Positions 11,249 through 56,100 of a stretch of 64,000 bases of DNA are shown here, piece by piece. A program made the translations under genes and the position numbers. How positions within the stretch are numbered: the first letter of the stretch is position 1; each line of letters starts with the position of its first letter. The notes under the pieces are model-generated. The model was not told the origin of the DNA and searched no databases. It saw only the letters and a program-made list of their open reading frames with translations. Source of the stretch: Tubulanus polymorphus (Eukaryota; Animalia; Nemertea); NCBI RefSeq assembly GCF_964204645.1, contig NC_134031.1:19103910-19167909 (forward strand). Direction: 5' to 3'.

Positions 11249-11676
11249 TGATTTGTCGGCACCTTGTTGTCGTTGTTGTATTCGTAGCAGATGTTTTTTC
11301 CTGTTGATCTATGTTTATTATAGTTCTACATTCATCGACGGATCACTGGTCAACGCGGCAGTCGACCCCCCCCCCCCCCCCCGTTTCTTTCTTTGACAGC
11401 AATTCCTTTTTTACGTCTATTAAAAATGAAAAATCGATTCGTGAATTTGAAGTAACGTACACCGTTGAATGAAGTCAAATGATTGTAAATCAATGTTTAT
11501 CGAATGTCGATATTTTGACGAGTGTTGTAACGTATTGGATCAAATATTTAATACTACAAGTTCGAAAAGGTTTAAGACTTTTCTCGAGGTTTGATTTATG
11601 CAAGGTGCGGTATCGCAGTTCACCTTTGATTTAATATGTTTCTAATCGAGGCAGAATTTAAATGAAACATCTTATA

Positions 11677-11936
11677 TCACGATTGGTAGAACACTATATC
11701 CGTGTTGACGCGATGAGGAGAGAATCCCACAATTATAATAAAAAGTCCGAAAATGAAACTTCGAGATAGTAGTTTATTTCAACGTTTCGACTATATCCTA
11801 ATAGTTATCTTCAGGAAACTGAAGATGACATTCCTGAAGATGACTATTAGGATATAGTCGAAACGTTGAAATAAACTACTATCTCGAAGTTTCATTTTCG
11901 GACTTTTTATTATCATTGTGGGATTCTCTCCTCATC
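11677..11936. mobile_element. Palindromic Penelope-like insertion A with hammerhead ribozyme
   Basis: Inverted arms 11711-11937, 34-nt tail 11677-11710, TSD GAAACATCTTATA (11664-11676 and 11937-11949). Confidence 0.82.
11831..11870 (+). ncRNA. Minimal type I hammerhead ribozyme motif (mirror copy on - strand at 11777-11818)
   Basis: TTC-CTGAAGA-T-GACTAT-TAGGAT-ATAGTC-GAAA-CGTT-GAA: core, 6-bp stem II, stem I TTC/GAA, palindromic ACGT stem III. Confidence 0.75.
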
Positions 11937-13070
11937 GAAACATCTTATAATAGTGAAATCCGAAATTTCTATCGAGATTATGTGATCTATTTTTTGGTTT
12001 TAGTGGATATGATTTATGAATGATAGACGATGTTTATAGAATAACATCATTAAAATTGAACTAATTTTCACCGGTTTCAGTTTGACAGCTGTGAAACTGG
12101 TTTCAAGCTGTCTAATTAAGAGCTGGGATGTTGTAGTGAGTGTGGAGTTATAGTTTAGTGAAAGGGTTTCGTGTACTCTTTCACCTTCAATGGTTCAAGG
12201 TGATTGATTTATAATTATTGATGGCCGATGCCTTTTAGCTATTTTGATTCCTCTGCTGCAGCGTGTTCTAAAATCTGCCCAGTTACCGGCGAGGCCTGCA
12301 GCAGCTATTACCACGCCACCCTGACCACTATTCAACTCACAACCGACAGGTTGGAATAAGACGTAGCGCTTGAGCAAATTTAGGTATAAAAAAATATTTA
12401 GAAGTATTTAGAAATATCATTTTTAGGAAACAGGAATCCGGAATAACTGGACTCAGTTCTCCATAGTTGTTGTTGATTAAGTTATTTAAAAAAATGATAA
12501 ATTCCTTTTCAGATAATCACCAAATGATCAGCATTTTTATAAATGTAGATATAAATTGGAGGGTTCTTTGACAATCTGAACATTTTGAAAATTTGTTACC
12601 ACTTATGCTGGAGTACGCTTGGGTGTGGATTTGATACATAAACATATTCTGTGAGTTTTTTTTTCAAATTTCAGCGTCTTATTGGTCAACTTCATTTGAA
12701 AATGGCTTAGAAAGACATCAATTCATACACACGCGCACATGAAGTAGATCAACAGTTATAACGCATTATTCATATGGATTACAATTCAAATTCTAGTAAG
12801 TATTACCACTTGTATTCAATGGGGTATCCGCACTGCTACTGTGGCAATTGAGGATCCACGAGGTGTCGCTAGTAGTCATTCAGTCTTCAGCGTTCGATTT
12901 CTTCTTCAATTAAAACTGAATGAACTTTTCTCTTAAATGGATCAATATTCCTAATGAAAACTATACCGATGTCTGAGTAGAAGAATGAAATCGTATATTT
13001 GGTGAGCGCTGTGATGATATACGGATTCGAATGAACTGATTCTGACAATGCAACACTGAGTACTTTGTCA

Positions 13071-13084
13071 CGCCATCTGGTGGG
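13071..13084 (-). promoter_or_regulatory. CTCF-like motif CCCACCAGATGGCG
   Basis: Matches the CTCF core; weaker opposite-orientation match at 12856-12870. Confidence 0.4.
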
Positions 13085-14022
13085 ATAGCCGGTGTTGCGG
13101 GTTACCCATAGTCATCAAATATTGAAGTGTCAAATTAAGTAATGAGGACATAATGAAATATGGAGGAAGTTGTTGAAATACTTTACACGGAAGCTGCATG
13201 AAATTCGATTAATGAAATTAGTCTATTAGAATGAGTTGTATTTCTGATGGCTGTTTACATTATCTCCAGTGAAATATAGGTTATGATGTTATTTTGAATA
13301 ACTGCAAAGAATTGACGATCAATAAAAATGATAGCATTTTCTCGGACCGACATTGTAGGGACTTGTGAAGAAAGGGTTAAACATGCCTAGCTACTTCCAA
13401 AATTATCAAAATACGTCTAAAGATGCTCTAAATCTGTAGGATATCAATATTATTAATTTCTGAACTAGAAAACTTTGAATCAATATCCTTATTTGGTGTT
13501 GTCAATTTTAACGAGGGGCGCGTGATGTTGATGAGTATTCATTAATGAATAATTGATGTTTAGTATGTGCAGAGGTATAATCATCTGAGGTAGAGCGGAT
13601 ACTCTCCCACCTCTGAAATCTACAGCGACCATTTTGGTTTTAGTAATAACTGATCTCAAAGTTGATCGCGGTTTTCAGATATGAACTAGTTTAATCTAGA
13701 AATGCCACGCTCAGTCCAAAAGTCTCTTCTACATTAAGTGAATGAATTAGTAGTATTTCCGATGATGACTTAGGAGGATATGTCTAGTCAAAACATCGAA
13801 AAGAGGCACAGAATTGTTCTACTCGAAGAGGTGAGGGGGGCAGTTCTGTTAGGTACTACTCAAGAGGTGAGGTCCAGTATTGTTGGGTTCTATTCAGAGA
13901 TGAAGGGGTCCGGGTATTGGTGATAAGGATGTGACTAAAAGATGATATGTTTCCCTCTCTCTCTCTTCCCCATCACTGCTGCTGATGCTGCTACGCGATC
14001 TCCATTCTATCAATTTACTGAT

Positions 14023-14036
14023 GTATCCATGGTAAC
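14023..14036. promoter_or_regulatory. RFX X-box-like motif GTATCCATGGTAAC upstream of CAMTA
   Basis: Second identical copy, ahead of the CpG-richer putative first-exon region (about 14400-15035, donor CTCGG|GTAAAG). Confidence 0.45.
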
Positions 14037-15687
14037 AGTTTGATATCGGTGATGGATATTGTGTTCACTGTTATTGTTGTCGACTGTGTTTGATGATGAA
14101 TTCTGTGCCACTTTTTGGCATTTTCTAAATCGAGAAAACACCGGTAACAACTAGCCTGAATTGAACATCTTCCATCTGGATGAAATCAGAAATCTCTTGG
14201 TATCCGGTCGGGATAGTTTCATTTCAATTTGAATAAAAATCTAGTACCCTCGGTAGATACTGAAAAGATCAAGCCCTGCATTGATGCTTCAATTCTGACC
14301 CTCTACAATTTGCAGCACCGAAGTCAAGCGGCTGATATATCGTCACATCACAGACACATTGTTTATAACCGTTCCGTGCTGGTTTCGCGCTGGTTTCTCG
14401 AAGATGTGAAATTTTTTCAGCAGAAATTCTAGATCTCTTCTCTCTCTTGCGCTCTTTACTAAACAGATGGAATCGCGAATCTCTGGTTTAAGAATATCCA
14501 GCTGAATATATTATTACGAATGATTGTTGTTGTTGTTCGGTAGATTTCGAGGTATTCGTCCGGGATATACCGCACGATATTATCATTTCATGATCATTGA
14601 AATTATCAATCGGTTTCGTTCGATATTTCATCATCGTCGTCGTCGATGTTCGATTGAATTGATTTTAGATTATTCATGATTCGGTTGTGATGTGTTAACT
14701 ATTTCCTGCCTGAAGGCGGCGCCGGGCGAGTGAGTGAGCGGTGAATGAATGATGCTGGTATCCGCTGACGACTGCTCCGTGCGACGACAACCTCCGTTTG
14801 AATTCAGTCTCTGTCAATTTTCTAACTCGTTCGAACCGGCAGCAGTTCTCTCTCGATAACGGATTTTTTATATCGTCCGGACTCCGTCAGGTCAGTGTCG
14901 CAGGTGTTCGAACCGGCAGCAGTTCTATCTCGATAACGGATTTTCATATGGTCTGGACTCAGTCGGGTCAGTGTGGCAGGTGTTAAGGATTTTGACGGAT
15001 CAGGGAAGATCGGAGAATTCTGGATTTCATCTCGGGTAAAGAGAGTTCAAATAGTTGAAAATCCATAATAGGACAAATATCTGATTTTCTAATGAGTAAA
15101 TGTTTATGAGTTACATTTCCCTTCATCAGGCGTAGAGCTAGTGATAAAATATTTCGATATTATACTGGTATTTATATAGAAATATGACAAAAGCGAATTA
15201 CAAACAATATTAAATTACCGTGTGACGGACATAATGAGGATAAAAAGTAATTAATTACATATTATCTAAATTACTGAGTAACGAAACCTTAACTAGTAGG
15301 TACCGGTAGTTTTCTTGATTAATTTTCTCTGTTAGAAGATTTTAAAGATTTTGTCTGCTGGCTGTTGCTAATGGAAATGTACTGTACTAGTGTATTGCGT
15401 AATTAACTTGATTGGTCAGTTTACTGATTTGTGCGCTGTAGCTGCTGCTGCTGCTGCTGCTGCAACCTTGGATTCTATCATCAGTAAACAAAATCACATA
15501 CATCATTACTTACTGGCTCAACACTGACCAGTTGTTCTGTTTACATTCTTAGAACCTTAGAACCATCATTTGAAATATTCATTTTAACAATGTGTATCTC
15601 TCTCTCTCTGTGTTGCAGTATGAGGTATGAGAATGATGGATAACATTGTGCAGCCTTAACGATGTAGAGTCAGATAGACCCTGAATT

Positions 15688-18600
15688 ATGGAAGGGTCAA
15701 ATGAAATATCCGTTTCTAAACCTAAGCAAGGTAAGTAACACCTTATATCTATCTATTAGGCATGTTTACACCATTGTAATCGGTGAAAATGTTGTTGTTT
15801 TATATCACTCCTACAGGCATTTTTTTACAAATTCAAAAGTCTTTCCCTCCCGCATAGCCCCCGAGCGTTGCTATAAAGGTCTAAGTTCTACAAAAGAAAA
15901 AATGTTCCTTTATTTATTAGTCATCCCTGATTTTCTGGAATCGTCAGTTATTGGTATCTCTGCAGTCATATCTCTCCCCCCCACCACTAACACTTCAGGC
16001 TCTTATTATTCACGATTTCTTTGAAAACATTTTTTCAATACGGGGTTCGTTTTTTGCCTGCCAGGAAATGGCTGCATATAAAACATCGCGCGCATGATCA
16101 TGTTATCAGATCGTGATTTTCAAATACCGGTAGTCAAATCCCGACCGGTTTTCATGAGCGAAAATGTCTTTGAAAGAATGAATCACTCAAAAATCGTCGC
16201 TCATTTTTTTCTGAAAACATTAACGGCAGAACTTAGTTAAAATAACCCCTTGGAAAGTAATGATTAAACGGTTTACTATAAACCGGAGAATTTCATCCTC
16301 AATTTCAATAATTTCATATTGGATATAATGAACCGTTGATAATGATCTTGTATCGTGCTGCCTTGTAAACCATCGGCTAGAATTTAGAGATTTCTTTCAA
16401 TCCCTGCTAAAAATCCCTTGTGTTTTAACACTTAAAATCTAGTCTCAGCTGGCCATAGAACCTTCTCGTACTCTGCCACATAGAACTCAGGGGCCAGTTG
16501 CACAGTCATGACTTAAGTCTAAAAGTGGTCTTAAATCTTAAGACTGGTCTTAAATTGTTAGATTGGCTATAGAACTAAGTCTTAGACTGGTCTTAAGTCT
16601 AAGCCATGACTATGCAACCGGCCCCAGGGGTAGTTGCACAGTCATGACTTAAGTCTAAAAGTGGTCTTAAATCTTAAGACTGGTCTTAAATTGTTAGATT
16701 GGCTATAGAACTAAGTCTCAGACTGGTCTTAAGTCTAAGCCATAACTATGCAACCAGCCCCAGGAATATATTTTACCTAGTCCGATTAAATCTAGTCCAT
16801 CAATCGATGATGTTTTCAAATCAAATCTCAAAACCCATTTTGTTCATCAAAGCTTTTAGTTAAACCATAGTTTTAGTTTTCCCTTTGTAATATGTAAAGC
16901 CAATGAGCATATTTTATATGGTTTTTAGGCTCAATGAATCATTATTATCATGAATTATTATTAAAATGAACAGATTTATCAGATCCCCTGATGTTCATCC
17001 TCACGTATATAGTGTATTGCATGTTGTTTATTATTTTTAGTTTTTTTGTTTGTATTTTGTGTTTTTAGGTTATTACGCGTTGGTTGAGAATGAATTTCGT
17101 TATGTTCCGTACCGAGAACCGAGAACCCCCGCAGTCACCGGTAGTCGAGCGCAAAAAAAAGGCATGCCGCTTTATATTCATTGATGTGTTGCAATCATCG
17201 GGAAAACGATGCTTGGCACATAAAAAAGTTTTTTAAGACAGAGTCATTTAATCATTGAATGGTGCGAAAAGTGTTTAGTTTAACATAGGCTATAGAAATT
17301 TAGTTCTGATCTTGTCACTTAACATTGACAGGGACTGTATGTTGACATTGACAGGGACTGTATGTTGACATTGACAGGGACTGTATGTTGACATTGACAG
17401 GGACTGTATGTTGGCAGTCTTTGAATGTTGACAGACATTGAATGTTACCGGTCTGTGAATGTCGCCAATCTCTGAATGTTGCCAGTAACTGAATGTTGAC
17501 AGTCTCTGAATGTTGGCAGTCTCTGAATGTTGACAATAACTGAATGTCGCTAGTCTCTGAATGTCGCCAGTCTCTGAAAATTGCCAGTAACTGAATGTTG
17601 GCAGTCTCTGAATGTTGACAGTCTCTGAATGTTGACAGACATTGAATGTTGGCATTAACTGAATGTTGACAGTCTCTGAATGTTGGCATTAACTGAATGT
17701 TGACAGTCTCTGAATGTCGCCAGTCTCTGAATGTTGACAGTAACTGTTCAATGTTATTGAAATCAGAATTGTGTTCATTCAGATTGACGACACTCCTCAG
17801 TCAGTGTTTACACGCTATGTGTATTTCAGTTATATAAACATTGTGACACAAGTTTCAAATGAATTGAATTCCACAGGTCTGTGGTGAACACTGTGGTGAA
17901 TTCTGTCGACCGGGTCTCTAATAATAATTCATTCACCTAATTACAGTAAAATGTGTCAAGCATTGTTCGTCAACTCTCCATCACAACCTAACTAATTAAT
18001 GGATCTAGGCTGATCTACTAATAAACCTTAACTCCCTTCTGATTACGTTATTTAGAATGTGTTCTAGATTTTAACCAGCATTTACGTTTAGCAAAAAGTC
18101 TGTCCTAAATTGGTCTGGTCGATAAATTTTAGGACGAACCAATTGAGAATGACCAAAATGACTTTATTCTAGAGGGCTGTATTTTGCAGGGAGCAGTTTC
18201 GAAAAGTGTCATTTTCGCAAATATTGTCGTGACGCTATAGAACTGCCCTTTTTCAGGTTTTCTCTGCCCCCCAAAGATGCAAATGCTAGGTACCTGTTCC
18301 CTGTTCTAGAATGCACCGTTTTGCTGTGTGATAAGAAACTTCGCATTAATTGCTGTGTTTTGTTTTATTTTGTTTCATTCTAAATGAGTTCAATTGTAGC
18401 TCAGCATAAGGGTTATATTCAGGATGATACAGGGATAAAAGAGGATGATTTATGATGATACAGGGATAATGCAGGATGATACAGGGGTAATACAGGATGA
18501 TACAGGGATAATACAGGATGATACACGGATAATACAGGATGATACACGGATAATACAGGATGATACAGGGATAATACAGGAAGATACATGGATAATACAG

Positions 18601-21600
18601 GAAGATACAGGGATAATACAGGGATAATACAGGATGATACACGGATAATGCAGGATGATACAGGGATAATACAGGACGATACAGGGATAATACAGGATGA
18701 TAGAGGGATAATACGGGACGATACGGGATGATACAGGGATTATGATATTGACAGTCATGTGAATTGCTGCAGCGGTGATAATGAAAAAAAGAAATTATGC
18801 GTATCACGAAATTTTCAGTGATTTGTCGTCATTGAGTGAAGTGAATGTTGTTATTACGAACAAATATAACACTTAGAGTTTGCGTGATGACTGTGTGAAA
18901 TGGAATATAGAACTAGGGAGAAAACCTGTCAATACCTGTCATACACTGAATAAACAGTCAGTTTCATGTTGTTCCTGGTTAGAATTTAACTCATAAAGTA
19001 CCAGGCCCTCGCCTAATTTTAACGATAGGTAAAATTACTCCAAACGAATTGTGGTAGTGACTCTCCTCACTTGCCACAGCATCATTTTGATAGCGTCTTA
19101 GCGTTTATATATCAACGCACTCTAGACACGCGACAGTTTAACTCAGTGTCTGGTCCAGGCCAGTTTGATCCGGGCCAAATTATTGGGGATGATGCGTGGA
19201 TCATTCATGTTTGGCGTCTACCGTGGTGTCAGTGTTTGATGTCTAGGGTGGTATCAGTGTTTGGCGTCTACCGTGGTGTCAGTGTTTGATGTCTAGGGTG
19301 GTATCAGTGTTTGGCGTCTACCACGGTGTCAGTGTTTGATGTCTAGGGTGGTATCGGTGTTTGGCGTCTACCACGGTGTCAGTGTTTGATGTCTAGGGTG
19401 GTATTGGTGTTTGGCGTCTACCACGGTGTCAGTGTTTGATGTCTAGGGTGGTATCGGTGTTTGGCGTCTACCACGGTGTCAGTGTTTGATGTCTACGGTG
19501 GTATCGGTGTTTGGCGTCTACCACGGTGTCAGTGTTTGATGTCTACGGTGGTATCGGTGTTTGGCGTTTACCGTGTTGTGTATCAGTAATGAATGCATCG
19601 GTTTTAATTGAGTCCTGGTATAAATCATTCTCCTCACTGAAAGAGAGAGAGAGAGAAATCGAAACAATCTATAATTATTGACTACATTCACTGGCAATCA
19701 AGAGTACTTTACCATGTAGAATAGCGTCAGTATTCATTGTATTGTCCGCAATAGTTTCCTGTTCGCTGATAATGGCTGTACTGTATACAATAAAGCTGCA
19801 TTAGAGAAATACCTCAGGACCCAGTTCCACAGTCGTGGGTTAAGATTTGAATCTGAGTTAAAACATTGAAAATGAACTAACTTTAACTCAGAGTTTACTC
19901 TAACTCACAACTGTGGAACCGGGCCCAGTAGTCTTCACCTCAAACTATTAAACCCCAATTAGATTCGTTTGAATTAAACGTTATTCGAGTTCGGTGTCGC
20001 ATGAAAATTGTTTTGATGAATTTCGAGGTTGGAGCGCTATCTCGAATGTAAACTTATTAGATATAAAGCACAGAAATTTAGACAAATCTCTTCGTTGAGT
20101 TCTCATTACATATGATACCAGTTGATTCCGGTTAATTACATCGATAACGCTGTATTTATATGCATTTGAATATTTGATGAATACTTTATTCAGATTGCAG
20201 TAAAATGAGACCCCAGCATTGCTGCTGCTGCTGCTGCTGCTGCGGTCTCTTGGGGTGATGATTGACGATATTTATCAGAATTTATTAAATTTGTCGACTT
20301 AATTATAGTAATATCGATTGAATCTTTATTGAATTACGGTGAACTGTTGTGGACAGTGATGGAAGTATCAGTGCTTGGTGATATGTAGCCAGCAGCCAGG
20401 TCAATGTGTTCCAAGCGTTTTTATCGAAAATGCCGGTCAATTCCATTTCTAAAACCGACCAATTCGGACCGATCAATACGCCAATCCAGGTCCACAGACC
20501 ATTTGAATCAGTTGAAATTCAGGTTTTTCTGGTTTATTCAAATATTGTATCGGTTAATAGTTATAGTTATACATTAAGTCTTCGAATATGAAATTTTATT
20601 AGGCTGCCCTAGAATTTAAGTATTTGACGCATATGACTGTAGGATAAACATGCATTGATTTAAAACATACCCGGCCTGGTTTTATTGTAATCTATGTTTG
20701 AAATGATATTTCAGTTGTTTGGATTGGATATGTGTAATGATCGAAATTTGAGCGATGAGTTTGAAATATGACTCGGAGGGCTGTAGAGTTTCATCGGAAA
20801 GTTTCTTAACCAACGAAGATTTAATGTTGAAATCGTCATGGAACAATTTCACTCGTGCGTTTTGATGATTTTGTATTTGATGATTATTTCATGTTTAAAT
20901 CAGTTTATTTTAATCATGTTCTCACGATGGATTAGAAAATGATTAATTATTTTTGGCAAATTAATCTCGTTGCCATACGGTGTCCGGCTTAACGTGGATT
21001 AATATCGACAGAAGATGAATTGCCCTCCTAATAATAACATAATTTCAGTGTCAAGAGAAGGAGGAGATCACAGTTGACTCAGTCACCGCTGGTCTCTCGT
21101 CTATTCACGGTTTAGTTTCATAAAAATGATGAATTCCTAAATCATGAGACGAGAAGATACACAATATCCGTGTAAGATGATAATGAGAGAAATCCCACAA
21201 TAACGAAGCCAAAACGAGAAACTTGAATAGAAGAGTATAATATTTGCGCAACGTTTCGGCTAAAGACTATTAGCCATCATCAGAGTACGCCTGATGATGG
21301 CTAATAGTCTTTAGCCGAAACGTTGCGCAAATATTATACTCTTCTATTCAAGTTTCTCGTTTTGGCTTCGTTATTGTGGGATTTCTCTCATTCCTAAATC
21401 AATTTAAGATGAATGAGTTAATGGAATTATCTTCATGTAGTTAATGGGTTAATGGGAATGAGTTAATGGAATTATCTTCATGTAGTCGCCATACAGTATT
21501 AATATATGCTTGTGTTGTATCAAACTAATGATGATAATGATAAGTTAATCAAATGACCGTTCCGATAATTGATGATGTGAAACGTTTTTCTATTGAAAAC

Positions 21601-24600
21601 TGTGAATTTGTTCGGGAATGGTTTACATCATGATCAGAGTAGCGACTTACCCATAAATCAGGGAGATATCGGGGAATTTTCTTTTCTTTAAAAAAGTCGG
21701 GGGATTTTGTAAATAAGCTAAAAATCAGGAAAAAGCCAGCGATATTTGTTGAGATTGCGAGATCACCGTAAATATCGTGCCGGTTATATAGACGAAACCA
21801 GATCTATCGTGAAAGGGTTAAACATTTTCAAAGTCTTCTTTCAAGATATTTCCAATCACCCGATCTATATACAGTATTTACGTATCGTGAAAACCTATTT
21901 TCAAAACGAACTTCAATAATTTTCGCTCATTTTTAGAATTGACATTAAAAGCGATTTTAGTGAAATACGATATAGTTATATGCGCGTTTAAAAGTTTCCC
22001 GATCACTTCACAGCGATGTTTATTTTCAAAAACGTTTTCCATTACGCGCACAAATCAATACAGACGTCGATAAAGAGTAGGCGAGCAATATTTATTTCAG
22101 GAAACTGATCTCCGATTTATAGTAAACAACTGAATATTATCTGATTGAGTCCCCAGACATAAATATCGGTTATTTTCAGTTAAGACACATTAAATTCAAG
22201 CATTTCTAAAATGATAATCATAACCAAACTACCGTTTTTGGTATAAGTATTTCATGAAAGATGAAGGTGCCTTCGTCGATGGCATCAGTAGCTGGTTCCA
22301 TTGAGACCGGAGTCAAAAAGTGGTCATTGAGTTAAGGGTCGCTAGGTCACTGAGTTAAGAATCGCTAGGTCACTGAATTAAGAGTCGCTAGATCACAGAG
22401 TTAAGAGTCGCTGGGTCACTAAGTTAAGAGTCGCTAGGTCACTGAGTTAAGAGTCACTGGGTCACTGAGTTAAGAGTCCCTGGGTCACTGAGTTAAGAGT
22501 CGCTAGATCACAGAGTTAAGTGTCGCTGGGTCACTAAGTTAAGAGTCGCTAGGTCACTGAGTTAAGAGTCACTGGGTCACTGAGTTAAGAGTCGCTAGGT
22601 GGTCACAGAGTTGAGAGTCACTAGGTCACTGAGTTAAGAGTCGCTAGATCAGCTTGGAAGGTTTACTAGTGTCAAGTCGATAAACTCAATAGTGATGTCA
22701 GATTTTTACGGCGATATAAAAAATGACGATCAATGAAATCAATCCGGAATCAATAATCAACAGTCTCCACCCAGAATTAATCATTGCTCTTTTTCCGTTA
22801 TTTTCCGATGTCTGTTTTTGATGATGAATTATTTATAGAGTAGTAATTAAATGTTGGATATAATTCACTGCGTGCACCGGACATTGTTTATCACTGATTC
22901 GCCTGTTTACTGGTCGTTTACTTTCCCGATGCTGCAGACAATCTGTCGGCTCAGATGACGTAAAGATATGATTAAAACTGAAATCACCAAAAATATCCCA
23001 GTACAGGGGGGGGGGGGCAGTATAGTCATAACATGGTACAGGGGGCAGTATGATAATACCATGGTACAGGGGCAATATAATAATACCACGGTACAGGGGG
23101 CGGTTCAGTGATACCACGGTACATGAGGCAAGTTTAGTGATACCACGATACATGAGGCAAGTTTCGTGATACCACGGTACATGAGGCAAGTTTCGTGATA
23201 CCACGGTACAGGGGACAGTTTAGTGATACCACAGTATTGGGGCGGTTCACCAATACTACAGTACATGTGGCAGTTCACAACGGTACAGGGGCCTCTTTCT
23301 GCTCTCCTCTCTTCTCCTCTGTCTGTTTGTATTTATAGGTAGCACTATGAACTCTGTTCAACTGTTTGATAAATCTCTGTACTATGAAACTGGTTTTTTA
23401 AAATCAATTATTGCACATATTTTCAATGGGAAAAAAACATTTGATTTAAACCTGAATTTTCTGATTGATGGAAACGAAACTAACGAAATACGTTTTATTT
23501 ATAGAAGATGAATGTAAACGCTTTGATGTACCGAAAGCTTTGGATGATATCGTCGTGGCGACCGTATTTCCAACGGAGCAACATCGCTGGAATACTAATG
23601 AGGTTCGTATTTGACCCCGGCCCTCCACCGGCCCTCCAAATCTTGGCTCTTGTCAAGCAGGTAGGGACCCATTTGACGCTAACGTGAATGGTTTGCCCGG
23701 TTGAATACCCCCAGTGTGATAGCGGTTGAGACCAAAGCCAATTCTGGTTGTATAGATCAGTTCAACGCAAGTCTTAAAAACAGTTGTTAGGCATCAACTT
23801 GTGAACCCTGGGACAGCTGTAACAGTTACACAATTGGAGAATTCTGTTGGAATGTCTCGGATTGCGACAGACTGACTGTACTAACATGTGTTGCACCTCT
23901 GACGATCCCAGACACTTATATCAAACTATCCATAATTATCTGTCAACCGAACCAATAACTTCTTCTCGGCCAGATGTTACTCGGGAATTTTTTCGATGAG
24001 TCAATTTTGTATTATATATATTTATATATACACGTCATTCTCTATATATGTATATAGGATAGGATCATGAATTTGTATAGCGCCTTGTAGATAGTAGATC
24101 TATTATCAAAGGTGTTTGTTCTCCATGAACAGGTAATGACTTCATCAGAAATGTCTCAATCTTTCCTTTCCTGGATGTGAGTCAATATCTCGAATTCTAC
24201 CACGATGGATGCGAAATCTTTCTGATGCAGATCATCTGAAATGTGATCAAGTCATAAAACGGACATCAGGCCGGTGCTGAGCTTTTTTTAGGGGCAGTTC
24301 CACTTCAAGAAAAAGGGCCTTTTTTAGATCTTGAATATGATTTTTTGATAGGCTAACCTAAACTTAAACAAAAAACACCTGAGTACATCAATGGATTAGG
24401 CCTACTTTTCATTTTGAAAAAACACGAAAATTTGCTATTATATCGACATTTCGAAAATCTGCGAAATCCCCCGAATCCGAACTTCAAGCTTTCAAGCTTT
24501 TCTTCTGTTACCCAGCGGTGAACTTTATGTGAGTTGTTTGTAAAAGTTTAAGGCTGGAAATGAATATTGATGATGGCCAGAAGCGGCACTGAACAGTACT

Positions 24601-27600
24601 TCATACCGGTGATTTCGTATATAAATCACGATGATTGAATGATTAGTGGTTCGGTTTATCGGTAATCAACATCTTGTATTCACACCTCTCTCTCCCCTCT
24701 CACTCCTTCTTACGACTGACCTGTTCTTGTTTAATACCACACGAGATCGATAGAGATCAACCATAAATCGGTGAGGAATTCAGTGGATAAAATAGCGCTC
24801 AAACCTTGAAATACAAAATATATTTAAACAGATAGAGAGTTAAACAAGAGCAACAGTTGAAATCTTCATTTTAAATGAATTTTATTTGAATCTAAAATGA
24901 AGGTTTAGATAGTTTTGCTATTGTTTAACTAACACTGAGTCAGTTGTGTATGTACTGAGGATAAACGTATAATTGCACTGATTAATTTGATGTCAATTGA
25001 TGTGTAATGATAATACACACCGTATCTATTATATGTATATGATGTGTTAATTGCTCGTCTATTGATGGATGTATGATGTATAGAGGTCTCTGGGGAGGAG
25101 TTTAATGAGGTAACGCAGCGTTATACTCCGCGCGCGCGGTGATACGCCGAGTCAAGTGAACATCCTCTCGACTCATCAATTCCGTCTGCCACTCGCTCCT
25201 CGTAATAAATCAATAATATCTTCTGCTACGGCGACGACGACCGAGCAGACGCCAGCCGGTATCGATGGTGATCATCATTTTTCTGCATTATTGAAAATCT
25301 TTATCCGCGCTCTTCCGTGCGATGTACATCTCGTTAGATCGGGCTTTTAAAAAGATCACTGATAAGTCTTCTGTCGGGGATGATTCAATGGAGTGGTAAT
25401 AGGGTCTCGGACCCCCGCCTTTTCATTCAAGTTGCCCTTCTGTCAAAACAAAGCTGCTTTATATGAGCAGTATATATTTCTATTGTATCTCTCATTCCTT
25501 ACAATAGGTCTTTCAGCTGAAAAAAAGCTTAAAGCTGAAAATTCAAAGTTCTATGATTGTTACGAATTAATCGATGTTTTAAAGCTTTTCAGTTTCTAAA
25601 TTATTCTACCGCTCTATATATGTTTTCATGTTGTTGCTATATTTCAGGAAATCGCGTCTTTGCTGATCGCGTACGATCGACATAAAGAATGGCAGTGCAA
25701 AGACGTGAAACAGTTACCGCACAGCGGTTCGATGTTACTGTACAATCGAACTCACGTGAAATTCCGCAACGACGGCTACTGCTGGAAAAAACGTAAAGAT
25801 GGCCGCACGACGCGCGAGGATCATATGAAACTAAAAGTTCAAGGAGTCGAGGTAACAGACACCCGCCGGAAACAGTAGAATATACGATTACAACTGAACT
25901 ATCTAGAAATAAAATATCATCTGTTGATTACACATGAACAATAGCGGTAATCACTGGACATGATTTGACCCGTGCCAAACAGGCACAGACCCATTTGGTA
26001 CCCATGCGAACGGTTGGCCCCGGTCAAATTTTGTATGATCTCGGCTATTGTATAACGGACACTGCCAAAACCTAGAATCCCATATTCTTATGATTGATCG
26101 TGAAGAATGTTTACATCCAGCGAGGGTGGTGAGAGCCACTTCTAGGTCTTTATAATGTATAAAACAGTTCACTTCAGTTAGAATTATGAACCCTGTATGT
26201 ATTTAATGAACAGCCCTCGACTTTTTCTTATCTAAAAGAGATTAGCAGCTTGTATTGGTAATCAATTAGTACCGCCGCGATCGGTTCCATCAAAATCAAA
26301 ACATAGAAATATCACCCTAATTTGGGCTGCTCTTCCTATTTCTCTAAGACAGTTCAGCGGTGGCTAATTTTTGTTTTTTCTGTTTCTGTTTTCGTTGCAG
26401 TGTATATACGGCAAATACTTTCATTCTGCCATTCTTCCAACATTCCACAAGCGTTGCTATTGGTTACTACACGTAAGTATTCGCCGTATGACGGTGTTGT
26501 GTCGATGTCAACCTCCTCTATCTCCCCATCCCCCCCCCCCATGGCAGTCTGTCAACGACCCCCCTGTGTGTTCAAGTGCTCTTTTGATGAAACAGGGAGT
26601 GCTGTCTCTCCTCTACTCTCTCTCCTGTCTCTCTCCTCTCTCTCCTGTCTCCTCTCTCTCCTCTCTCCTCTCTCTCCTCTCTCTTCTACTCTCTCTCCTC
26701 TCTACTCTTCTGTCTTCTCTCTCTCCTCTCTACTCTCCCCTCTCTCTCTTCTCTCCTCTCTCTCTCCTCTCTCTGTCTCCTCTCCTCTCTCCTCCTTGCT
26801 CCTCTCTCTCCTCTCTCTCGCTCCTATCTATATAGGCAAACTGGTTTCAATTTTCTGCACGTTTTTCTGTGTCGAATTGCCAAAAAAAAACCGTTTAAAC
26901 GATCTCTTCCCCTGAGCTTTGTAAAATAGACAACCTCACAAAGGATCCGGTTCCGTATTGATTGTATTACCCGCAAGCCTGAACGTGTATCATCGTTTCA
27001 AATTTCCTAATATTATAAATATTCGCGTTGTTTTTATTTTTCTCGAACAGAACCCCGATATCGTGTTAGTTCATTATCTGAATGTTCCGTATTCCGATGA
27101 TAATAAACTGTCGATGGCATCACTTCCGATTCTGGGTAAATCTCATTACTGGACGCACGCCGAATTACAAGCTCAATTACGACCTATGTGTGAGTATAAC
27201 GACTGCGAAAATCAAATCTCATGATTCACTGTGACTTTATGTCTTAAGTCGGTTGTAGGTGCGATACCCTCATAACTATGATTTCTTAGTAGAACGATGA
27301 CCACACTCAAACGTGGTGAACGGATAATAAGATAAAATCCCACTATTTACAGATTAAAAGAATTTAAAAACCAGAATTTATTTATTAAATCTAAAATATT
27401 TAAAAGACACGACGTTTCGATCTCACCCTAGAAACCCTGTCACACCTGACGATGATCTCTAGGGTGAGATCGAAACGTCGTGTCTTTTAAATATTTTAGA
27501 TTTAATAAATAAATTCTGGTTTTTAAATTCTTTTAATCTGTAAATAGTGGGATTTTATCTTATTATGATTTCTTAGATTTCGGAAAAATACTCGTGTTCA

Positions 27601-53100: not shown

Positions 53101-56100
53101 CCAAATCGAGCTATAGTCGACATTTGTTTAAAACCCGACCCTTCGTTAACGTTAAATCTTTTATATTTTGCGTACGCACTTTATGAAACTTTTCTAGTCG
53201 CACCAATCACAGTAACGCTTGAATTCAAACCACAACTTCGGGACTTCCGAAATATGTCCTCGTTTTTTCATCAAAAGCTGCCATTACATGACCTGGAACA
53301 CTGTCCACACAGGTGCCAAATTGGCCAGTGTCTGTTTGGCGCTCTCTAATTAGGCACGGACCAAATTTGGCTCAGGCCTGGTCCGTGCCGAATAGTTTTA
53401 GTGTGATCGCGGTTTAAGTGTCCATGAAATTCCTCATTAGATTAGTAAACATGAAGTCAAATATTACTTTCGCTACTAGTGCAATAGTAGTGGTAGATGA
53501 AATACAGTGTGAAAAACCAGTTGATTATTGAAAGATCGTTGTTTTTTATCATCAAATATAAGAAACATATTTCTCAGTACGGGTTGCCTGTCAGCGTGCC
53601 TATTCATACCAGTAATTGAAATATAGACACAAGATTCTTTGTTATAGAATATATAACGTGACAAGTTTTTTCACAAGCTCTAGATTCCAGAAAAACCGGT
53701 ATCTATCATAATTCATATCGAAAACAATCAGAAGAAAATGTAAAGCAATATTTATCATATCAAGGTATAGAGAATATTGAAAAGGACTCTCGACCTGTTT
53801 TATTTGTCTTCAGATCCCATTCCTCACTGATATTTGACTTAACTAATTAAATTTGGAAACAATAATCAATTGACTTTCGTATCAGGAATGAAATCAATTC
53901 ATTTTCTCAATAATTTGCCTCACAATTCAAATATTTATCTATAACAAAGCTAACAACAGCCCTACAACTCTGGATCGGATTTCATACCTAATCTTTAACA
54001 GACCAAACTCTCCCTCTCTCCCTCCATATTACACAAGGCTCTTCCTCCCTTTCTGCCACCAGATCCAACCAAACCTCTTACCAAACTTTTCCCATTGCAG
54101 CCTCACCCAATTCCAGTACCCAACTCTCCAACTATCAGTTCTAGTACCCAACTCTCCAACTATCAATTCCAGTACCCAACTCTCCAACTATCAGTTCCAG
54201 TACCCAACTCTCAAATTATCAGTTCCAGTACCCAACTCTCAAACTATCAGTTCCAGTACCCAACTCTCCAACTATCAGTTCTAGTACCCAACTCTCAAAC
54301 TATCAGTTCCAGTACCCAACTCTCCAACTATCAGTTCTAGTACCCAACTCTCCAACTATCAGTTCCAGTACCCAACTCTCCAACCATCAGTTCTAGTACC
54401 CAACTCTCCAACTATCAGTTCCAGTACCCAACTCTCCAACCATCAGTTCTAGTACCCAACTCTCCAACCATCAGTTCTAGTACCCAACTCTCCAACTATC
54501 AGTTCTAGTACCCAACTCTCCAACTATCAGTTCCAGTACCCAACTCTCCAACCATCAGTTCTAGTACCCAACTCTCCAACCATCAGTTCTAGTACCCAAC
54601 TCTCCAACTATCAGTTCTAGTACCCAACTCTCCAACCATCAGTTCTAGTACCCAACTCTCCAACTATCAGTTCCAGTACCCAACTCTCCAACTATCAGTT
54701 CCAGTACCCAACTCACCCCTCAGTTCAGTGTTCTGTGATCTGATTGAATACTTACAATGACCGCTATTAGCAGAAACAGAGAACCTACGACAGTAACTAG
54801 CCAACGTATCGTTCAGATAATGATTCGTCGGTTTCTCCGAGCCGTCCGTCGAACAGAAATCACCGGTTCTCGATCGGCGGCGAAGAAGTTTAATTCGTCC
54901 ATCATCGGACGGTAGATAAATATCCCAAGCTTCTAACAAGTGGTTGAACATCGCGGTTGAATGACCGTTAACTCGATCACAGCGACGTACATCGGGTAAA
55001 TTGAGTTCAATCATCAACTTCGTCTCGATCTCAATACACCAGCAACCGGTTCAATATCATATACAATCAGCTATATTCGTCTTTTTAATTCGGTTCGATA
55101 AATCACATTAATGTACCATCGATCGTGCTTCCTCGTGCATACATCACCGTCATATACAATCTAATTCCACAATAAAGAAACAGTCTGGAATGTTTCCAAA
55201 ATGTTTCCGAAATGTTTCCTCGAGCTGTTGATGTTTCGACTATATTCTAATAGTCATTTACAGGAAAACTGAGGTTACAACAAAATTATGAAATATTAAT
55301 ATGTACCATCCATAATGAACCTATCCTAATATTTTAGTGTGATTGCTTCATTAGTCTGTCATTGCTCTGGACTGTAATTTTGTAGAAACTTTAGAATTCC
55401 TGAAGATGACTAATTGGATGAAATAAACAAATAGCTCAGGAAAACATTTCAGATTTTGTTTTTCTTTTATATAGTGGAATTTGATCATTTTTTTTTCTCT
55501 GAATGTTTCATCAAGATTAACATCAGATTCATGTTGCATCTCACATTCACCAGGAAACTGGTGCTATAAGCTATAATTACAGTCACCTCTAATACTCTCC
55601 CCCTCCCCCTCCCTTGAACTGGAAAACTTATAAATACAATCAAATTCACTACTGCCTCCTGGTTCTTATTTTACAGAAACTATTGTAATCATGATTTATC
55701 ATAATCATTCAATTCATTGAGAACAAACAGGTCGTCATTTTAGTAAATCATAACTTACAGTAGTTTTTGTGAAGCTAACCCCGAGATAATCGACAGCAGA
55801 CTGATTTTTTCAAAATGATCCTTCCACTAGTTTCTAGAACTTCATGTCGCTGTTGCTCACAAGTCGTCGTCAGCTGTTTTCGTACAAATATTAGAACCAT
55901 TTTTTTGTTTGGTAGAAAAATGCTCAATAGCATCGAGATTATATTGGATTTGTGATGTATTGTGAGAAGCACGTTTTACGATGATGATGATGATGAATTG
56001 CACCGCATTTCACATTCACCAGGAATTATAGGTAATAACCTCTAAATATCCCGACCGATTGCCAACAGAAGCTCGAGGTATACAATTTTCCAAATGGCGA

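Follow-up and report, generated by a model that had tools for sequence, protein, structure and literature searches.

Results

Three one-tailed fold-back insertions in a 64-kb window

The subject of this work is a set of three hairpin-shaped insertions of 248-277 bp within a 64-kb stretch of the genome of the nemertean Tubulanus polymorphus (NC_134031.1; hereafter the window, to whose positions all coordinates refer unless they carry an L-number, which denotes a sampled genomic locus). The insertions, A (11677-11936), B (21145-21392), and C (27290-27566), stem from Penelope-like elements (PLEs), as described below. Each is flanked by exact direct repeats, the target site duplication (TSD), of 13 bp in A, 12 bp in B, and 13 bp in C, and each has an unpaired tail, on one side only, of 34, 37, and 34 nt, respectively. 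The inverted arms of A (11711-11817 and 11831-11937) are 107 nt long and 98% complementary, those of B (21182-21283 and 21291-21392) are 102 nt long and 100% complementary, and those of C (27324-27432 and 27458-27566) are 109 nt long and 100% complementary; in B and C, the final 3 nt of the right arm coincide with the TSD copy, so that the boundary is ambiguous by 3 nt. An initial annotation, made from the letters alone, had described TSDs of 12-13 bp, left-only tails of 34/37/34 nt, and near-perfect inverted arms of about 100 bp, and this description was borne out, with the arms remeasured at 102-109 nt and 98-100%. The features of the three insertions are collected in Table 1.

Table 1. Features of insertions A, B, and C, with their positions in the window
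Feature	Position	Strand	Basis or remark
A left TSD, 13 bp	11664-11676		exact direct repeat of 11937-11949
A 34-nt tail, stretch of PLE leader from reverse transcription start site 1 to site 2, with ACACGG..GTGT box	11677-11710	-	continues parent L076 past the arm end; box kept in 5 families
A tail-bearing arm, antisense PLE leader, reverse-complement hammerhead at 11782-11814	11711-11817	-	96% identity to parent L076
A junction filler, partial sense re-copy of hammerhead start	11818-11830	+	direct repeat; differs in every genomic copy
A tail-less arm, sense hammerhead, ends at reverse transcription start site 1	11831-11936	+	99% identity to parent L076
A sense hammerhead	core C3-H17 11834-11867; helix I 11831-11833 with 11868-11870	+	motif match and covariation
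A right TSD	11937-11949		direct repeat
B left TSD, 12 bp	21133-21144		direct repeat
B 37-nt tail	21145-21181	-	same sequence at 3' end of the element with reverse transcriptase and GIY-YIG domains in L071
B tail-bearing arm, 5' end halts at core CUGA (+8)	21182-21283	-	inverted repeat, ungapped mapping to parent
B tail-less arm, begins at predicted +1 (AGTACGC), sense hammerhead core 21291-21324	21284-21389	+	21390-21392 shared with TSD
B right TSD	21390-21401		direct repeat
C left TSD, 13 bp	27277-27289		direct repeat
C 34-nt tail	27290-27323	-	conserved box comparison
C tail-bearing arm, truncated inside hammerhead helix II, starts at about +17	27324-27432	-	inverted repeat, mapping to parent
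C 7-nt untemplated junction filler	27433-27439		L041 row of the arm-end mapping
C tail-less arm, begins at initiator-like TCACAC, sense hammerhead core 27446-27479	27440-27563	+	98% to parent L078; 27564-27566 shared with TSD
C right TSD	27564-27576		direct repeat

The open reading frames (ORFs) near A, B, and C gave zero Pfam matches, which indicates that the insertions sit in non-coding DNA. Elsewhere in the window, a 34-nt fragment at 55233-55266 (-) is 91% identical to the start of the family A leader, covering the 5' half of the hammerhead, and has no adjoining arm or tail.

The fold carries a minimal hammerhead ribozyme

The pattern CTGANGA-N14-24-GAAACGT has five matches in the window, every one of them inside A, B, or C, against 0.03 expected, and a count of five was reached in 0 of 100 shuffles. 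Comparison with related elements of the same genome (see below) extended the alignment to five PLE families, in all of which the hammerhead core (CUGANGA...GAAA) is invariant, one bulged T follows A9, and the G10.1-C11.1 pair is constant. Helix II has 6-7 bp and helix I 3-4 bp; over the five families, 96% of the cells in these helices are paired and 8 of the 10 pairs show compensatory changes, compared with 26-44% pairing in slid controls, figures that come from only 5 sequences. The covariation of stems I and II reported for the three window copies thus extends to the wider set. There is no helix III hairpin but only the palindrome ACGU, which is found in A, B, and C and in four of the five families, the fifth having ACAU in an old copy. 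Of the TAGNNT motif assigned to loop II, the TAG is kept in 4/5 families and the final T in only 3/5. A hammerhead had also been placed at each fold. It is present in all sense arms, whereas the tail-bearing arm of C halts inside helix II and lacks the CUGANGA core. The cut sites given in the initial annotation (after 11867, 21324, and 27479) are the correct H17 positions for the motif. By their defining features, the hammerheads of A, B, and C appear to be the dimer-type minimal hammerhead ribozyme (min-HHR) of the pseudo-long terminal repeats (pLTRs) of metazoan PLEs.

A covariance-model search, which had been proposed as a check, did not match the motif: the Rfam models gave no hammerhead at the gathering threshold, and none on element A even at E values up to 10. 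This miss is expected because the hammerhead models require helix III, which is absent from the minimal form. Rfam did match the region 11763-11888 to plant and animal precursor models (MIR5512, MIR161, and mir-788; E 1e-4 to 4e-11), with scores far under gathering. These microRNA (miRNA) and small RNA matches to the palindrome of A are spurious, and they imply that such fold-backs could be mis-called miRNA hairpins.

Three autonomous PLE families are the parents of A, B, and C

Whole-genome searches with A, B, and C returned 1182, 1157, and 1588 matches, respectively, which are first-look candidates and not copy numbers. The full-length copies that were scored are 80-97% identical and have the tail on one side in all cases; in family A, the arms are about 99% identical among the 10 copies compared. 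Some matches to B consisted of the tail and one arm only, spaced 2857 bp apart, and led to the locus L071, a partial tandem made of 2857-bp direct repeats plus a 151-nt inverted terminal copy. An ORF of 796 amino acids at L071:3313-5703(-) contains a reverse transcriptase domain (RVT_1, E 3.7e-12) and a GIY-YIG domain (E 4.6e-6). The tail and arm of B form the 3' end of the 2857-bp unit, with 94% identity to L071 over tail plus arm, and the whole leader module of this parent lies just ahead of the ATG. A PDB sequence search with the ORF found no match.

Only the ORF of the B parent was translated, and the parents of A and C were matched to it by protein search. Besides several intact copies of the B-parent family, this search revealed many of families that share 68%, 57%, and 55% identity with it and whose 3' ends have hammerheads of their own. 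A matches such an end in the 68% family (L076) at 96-99% identity, and C matches that of the 55% family (L078) at 98%; a fourth hammerhead comes from the 57% family (L077) and a fifth from another unit in L071. A, B, and C accordingly appear, from these matches, to derive from three distinct autonomous PLE families with about 55-68% protein identity to each other. Several features of canonical endonuclease-positive (EN+) PLE insertions were found: an ORF with reverse transcriptase and GIY-YIG domains, matching terminal sequences, a partial tandem with an inverted copy, a tail at one end, and short TSDs of variable length at an AT-rich target. The initial annotation had anticipated that the insertions derive from PLEs, and the genome-wide arm search that it advocated gave 1157-1588 candidates per family and located the parent. 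It had further treated the insertions as at least three subfamilies of mini-retroelements. The PLE derivation holds, whereas the notion of a mini family does not: the insertions have no promoter of their own, each has its own junction, and they are better described as by-products of three distinct families.

The fifth unit, at L071:1-133 (-) and L071:2562-2623 (-), adjoins the family B tandem and has its own hammerhead, with a 7-bp helix II, a 10-nt loop, and ACAT for ACGT; the spacer ahead of its conserved GTGGGATT box is much shorter. Two old one-tailed fold-backs, one B-like (74-75%) and one C-like (87-93%), lie at L036:654-905 and L036:1200-1421 within 900 bp of a third, so that PLE fragments cluster locally. 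The single-arm family A copies in L082 and L083 (C2:14950691-14951413 and C2:14804843-14805565) lie 146 kb apart and do not differ in match coordinates or in identity, pointing to a segmental duplication in which the insertion was included. Of the words sampled from the end of the family A parent, 46% were present in a run labelled as another organism (X5), implying that a related species carries a near-identical PLE, through either recent common descent or transfer.

The two arms end at two adjacent sites, and the target is symmetric

In the tailed arm, the end is invariably at the same point (site 2), and that of the other arm (site 1) falls 32-38 nt before it. Site 1 directly follows a GTGGGATT..TCT..ATC box that is conserved in all five families, and the tail holds a second conserved box (ACACGG..GTGT), which reads ACACGGATATTGTGT or, in C, a covarying equivalent. 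A hairpin formed by ACAC..GTGT in the tail was no more stable than in shuffles, and we retain it as a conserved sequence box only. Of 20 loci selected solely on a 63-nt arm segment, 12 proved to be fold-backs, each with exactly one tail. Long or single copies have their 3' ends at site 1 in three cases and at site 2 in five; if the two ends of a fold-back chose their sites independently, 12 of 12 one-tailed copies would arise with a probability of at most 2.4e-4. No two-tailed mini element was found among about 35 tail-sampled ends.

TSDs are 9-16 bp long (mode 13), with one further case of 20 bp, and the target is 68% A+T. It is also symmetric, AAAC before and GTTT after the TSD, with an excess of A at -4 to -2 and of T at +2 to +4 (p 1e-5 to 1e-8). 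This symmetry indicates that both strands are nicked in the same motif, 12-14 bp apart, each 3' end carrying the TSD.

Arm 5' ends cluster at a predicted transcription start

In each parent of A, B, and C, an 8-nt TATA box lies at -31 and is separated by exactly 21 nt from a downstream TCA (TCATTA, TCAGTA, and TCACAC). In the fourth family (L077), TCATTC is found about 30 nt downstream of a TATA-like box of 6-7 nt. From the TCA, it is 4-7 nt to the start of the hammerhead core. Relative to the A of TCA, the 5' ends of the arms cluster between -2 and +9, and usually at least one arm per copy reaches the TCA, even though parent sequence runs on for about 300 nt upstream of the arm ends; L072 and L075, which are copies with a single arm, start at +4 and +8. 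Along the A parent, the word depth of DNA contigs from the same species shows a roughly 10-fold step up exactly at 433 (the predicted +1 being 430), and more than 100 contigs diverge at 432/433. The depth of the hammerhead-arm segment is 20-100 times that of the ORF and 3' untranslated region, and it is highest over the ribozyme. None of the arms in 81 copies starts at the predicted cleavage site, and no DNA copy ends there. These data fit most likely with a common arm end that corresponds to the 5' end of the RNA, i.e. the transcription start, placing the hammerhead at +8 to +41. The ribozyme would then occupy the very 5' end of the transcript, and for this reason adjoin the fold. Fold points do cluster next to the ribozyme genome-wide, in agreement with what had been proposed from the three window copies.

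Fold junctions differ in every copy and the two arms are independent

Junctions and arm ends were compared in 61 copies (10 A, 21 B, and 30 C), which were partly selected by similarity to the window copies, and in the 20 arm-sampled loci described above. Arm ends were mapped by an ungapped walk, in which values of +21 and above (21, 27-31, 35, and 41) are artefacts of point mutations or insertions and deletions near the anchor; the reference for family C was the L078 parent arm joined to the tail of window copy C. Tails and arms are conserved in the 61 copies and the junction is unlike in every copy, and the same was seen in the 12 arm-sampled fold-backs. The 61 junctions comprise direct abutments, overlaps of 1-4 nt at small palindromes, and fillers of up to about 25 nt, which are often short re-copies of the hammerhead start; the arm-sampled copy L091 has an 83-nt filler. 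The junction being unique to each copy, the fold-back is rebuilt at each insertion. Fold-backs also carry no promoter, as the TATA box lies outside the element, and in family B, the median arm identity is 0.989 within a copy compared with 0.913 between copies. Together, the lack of a promoter, the unique junctions, and the likeness of arms within a copy indicate that copies do not come from a fold-back master but are each made from a single-arm template.

The tailed and tail-less arms start at +8 and +1, respectively, in window copy B and at +17 and -2 in window copy C; in family C, the tailed arm often halts inside the hammerhead (+5 to +19). Because in these and many other copies each arm has templated sequence that the other lacks, neither arm is a copy of the other. 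Judged by these ends and by the arm identities, the two cDNAs of a fold-back appear to be independent but to come from the same source.

Two other junctions were observed. At L071:7944-8135, the 5' end of a long family B insertion has a complete inverted leader, 9 untemplated nt, a 32-nt sense hammerhead start, and then a jump into mid-ORF. A single event here combines a mini fold-back junction with a template switch, and the insertion bears tail sequence at both ends. At L076:432-481, many DNA contigs join 481 back to 432 via a linker of 19-23 nt; these are tandem arrays whose unit, of roughly 69 nt, is in essence a single hammerhead. Such arrays could arise by reiterated template jumps, as is suggested by the short re-copies of the 5' end of the RNA that recur in fold-back junctions.

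Discussion

A model for the formation of the fold-backs

We propose, with a probability of roughly 75%, that A, B, and C are dead-on-arrival by-products of autonomous PLEs, each consisting of two head-to-head cDNA copies of a short RNA leader. The leader would begin at a transcription start in the pLTR (TATA at -31 and an initiator-like TCA), followed by the minimal hammerhead at about +8 to +41, a spacer of roughly 60 nt, and a conserved 3' module composed of the GTGGGATT..TCT..ATC box and then the ACACGG..GTGT box, where reverse transcription would initiate at two adjacent sites, 34-37 nt from each other. In this scheme, the PLE endonuclease would nick the target 5' of (G)TTT on each strand, the two nicks being 12-14 bp apart, and reverse transcription would be primed by both 3' ends, one at the distal site, giving the tail, and one at the proximal site. 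Both cDNAs would run off at or near the 5' end of the RNA, and microhomology or filler would join their ends, in the simplest case through a template jump that leads from the end of the RNA to the other cDNA, creating the fold. That both target strands prime, and the order of these steps, is what we infer from the copies. The hammerhead is probably found at the fold through its position at the 5' end of the transcript and not through cutting or blocking.

Several points weigh against this proposal. The transcription start is predicted solely from the TATA and initiator motifs and the ends of DNA copies; many arms reach T(-2) and not A(+1), which leaves the start uncertain by about 3 nt, and a few extend further upstream (-30 in L093), so that longer templates are sometimes used. 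In family C, RNA structure or helix-II palindromes may influence the position of the joint. The samples are small (61 + 20 copies) and partly chosen by similarity to the window copies, and the genome-wide numbers of about 1200-1600 per family are first-look candidates only. Finally, either start site was open to either strand in vitro (PMC11167929), and this alone does not predict the strict one-tail rule.

Other origins of the fold

The initial annotation had suggested that the hammerhead defines where the template ends or folds back, and a ribozyme could do so if self-cleavage set the template end, if it blocked reverse transcription, or if it dimerised two leader RNAs so that their cDNAs converge. 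We consider such a role unlikely, although dimerisation of the RNA may conceivably help to juxtapose two leaders. It would account for the fold lying within about 15 nt of the core in all families, for the ACGU helix-III palindrome, which implies RNA dimers (PMC4209133), and for the frequent ending of one arm inside helix II in family C, and arms of the same source are what would be expected of two leaders paired from birth. However, the cleavage site lies 34 nt downstream of C3, where no arm starts in 81 copies, and word depth peaks over the ribozyme. Moreover, reverse transcriptase moves 3' to 5', so that a block would leave arms without the ribozyme, yet the arms hold all of it and stop upstream, at the TCA that follows the TATA box; and hammerhead mutants insert normally in vitro, with no reads ending at the cut site (PMC11167929). 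Snap-back of a single cDNA, which would prime itself and be copied into the second arm, has been put forward for palindromic junctions in rotifer PLEs (PMC3846280) and would fit the near-identical arms and the palindromic microhomology that some joints show (for example, TCAG/CTGA and GTAC in family B). The independent arm ends count against it, as many copies (L011, L041, L043, L046, and others) have the tail on one arm and extra 5' nucleotides on the other, and the symmetric target motif indicates two equivalent nicks; we therefore regard it as very improbable.

We give still less credence to the fold-backs being true non-autonomous elements, similar to miniature inverted-repeat transposable elements (MITEs) or retrozymes, that are transcribed and retrotransposed whole by PLE proteins. 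The abundance of about 1200-1600 first-look candidates per family and the uniform overall length would be consistent with such elements, and non-autonomous PLE derivatives are known (PMC8557442; bioRxiv 10.64898/2026.07.22.740005), but the junction differs in every copy, the TATA box is outside the element and leaves the copies without a promoter, the arms within a copy are near-identical while family B copies differ by about 9%, and the elements are inverted and not tandem. A MITE or fold-back DNA transposon was rejected, as the TSD length varies from 9 to 16 bp, 34-37 nt are extra at one end, the junctions are all different, and the parent is a retroelement. An animal non-LTR retrozyme was likewise rejected: the term retrozyme-like, applied to the insertions earlier, does not suit single inverted pairs that are not head-to-tail tandems.

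A possible geometry and its significance

The simplest reading of the one-tail rule would lie in the geometry of the enzyme. Tentatively, a dimeric PLE protein on a single leader RNA, i.e. one ribonucleoprotein particle (RNP) with one RNA and two primers, might present the nicked strands to the two adjacent start sites, so that one strand would always take the distal and the other the proximal site, and after run-off at the capped 5' end, one cDNA would jump onto the other. We hold this arrangement to be possible, but would not yet call it probable. If it were true, it would explain the obligate single tail, the near-identical arms even in a diverse family, and the symmetric target, and the inverted and tailed architecture of PLEs would be a direct read-out of enzyme geometry.

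To our knowledge, PLEs are the least understood class of retrotransposons, and we know of no accepted explanation for their tandem, inverted, and tailed insertions. Each fold-back preserves a record of the two reverse transcription start sites, of the 5' ends of both templates, and of joint and target, and there are at least about a thousand matches per family in this genome. These natural records agree with the only in vitro study and add three constraints, namely a fold at the predicted transcription start, independent cDNAs of the same source, and exactly one tail. For annotation, such elements should be masked as PLE fragments and not as MITEs, miRNA hairpins, or retrozymes.

Comparison with known systems

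In LINE-1 twin priming, reportedly described by Ostertag and Kazazian in 2001, a second primer is said to anneal internally on the same RNA and so to invert part of one copy. The fold-backs resemble it in that both nicked target strands would prime reverse transcription and an inverted segment results; they differ in that both primers would use dedicated adjacent sites near the 3' module of the RNA, giving two near-complete head-to-head copies.

Overall, A, B, and C fit the published biology of PLEs, in which min-HHRs, inverted pLTRs, tails, and two reverse transcription start sites have each been described. Like the canonical EN+ PLEs (Pen2a_Av, PMC3846280; PMC8557442), the families studied here have a parent with a reverse transcriptase as well as a GIY-YIG domain at the C terminus, partial tandems with an adjacent inverted 5'-truncated copy, a tail of 30-40 bp at one end, a short variable TSD, TATA and initiator motifs in the pLTR, and palindromes or microhomology at the inverted junction. 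The Adineta vaga PLE, for instance, has an inverted pLTR, a one-sided 31-bp tail, and TATA and initiator motifs in the pLTR (PMC3846280), and in PLEs, the tail is usually at one end (PMC8557442, PMC3846280). Unlike these elements, the commonest product here is the leader only (about 105-150 nt) on both sides with no ORF, and leader-only products exceed ORF-bearing copies by at least an order of magnitude in word depth; in addition, the arms start at the initiator with the promoter excluded, and the TSD mode is 13 compared with 8-10 bp.

A mechanistic parallel comes from the Poseidon element PAc of Anolis carolinensis, whose protein nicks and extends both strands in vitro and starts reverse transcription at two internal sites, the interval between them being the tail (Frangieh et al. 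2024, PMC11167929). [quoted passage not shown] They differ in that the PAc hammerhead overlaps the start codon and its reverse transcription sites are inside the ORF, whereas the B parent has the module in the leader before the ATG, and in that the genomic fold-backs strictly combine a distal with a proximal start, a rule that was not reported in vitro. The ribozymes show no essential difference in sequence features from the min-HHRs of metazoan PLEs (Cervera and de la Pena 2014, PMC4209133), with which they share the CUGANGA...GAAA core, G10.1-C11.1, a helix II of 6-7 bp, an open helix I of 3-4 bp, the palindromic ACGU in place of helix III, and the occurrence of many covarying families per genome; the same paper notes dual min-HHRs about 100-700 bp apart on opposite strands. 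Finally, the animal non-LTR retrozymes (PMC7229834; bioRxiv 10.64898/2026.07.22.740005) are, like A, B, and C, short, ORF-less, hammerhead-bearing, and derived from PLE pLTRs, but they form head-to-tail arrays that give circular RNAs, whereas each of A, B, and C is one inverted pair, whose ribozyme a long hairpin would lock up. The retrozyme-like relatives in this genome are the 69-nt tandem hammerhead arrays, and not A, B, and C.

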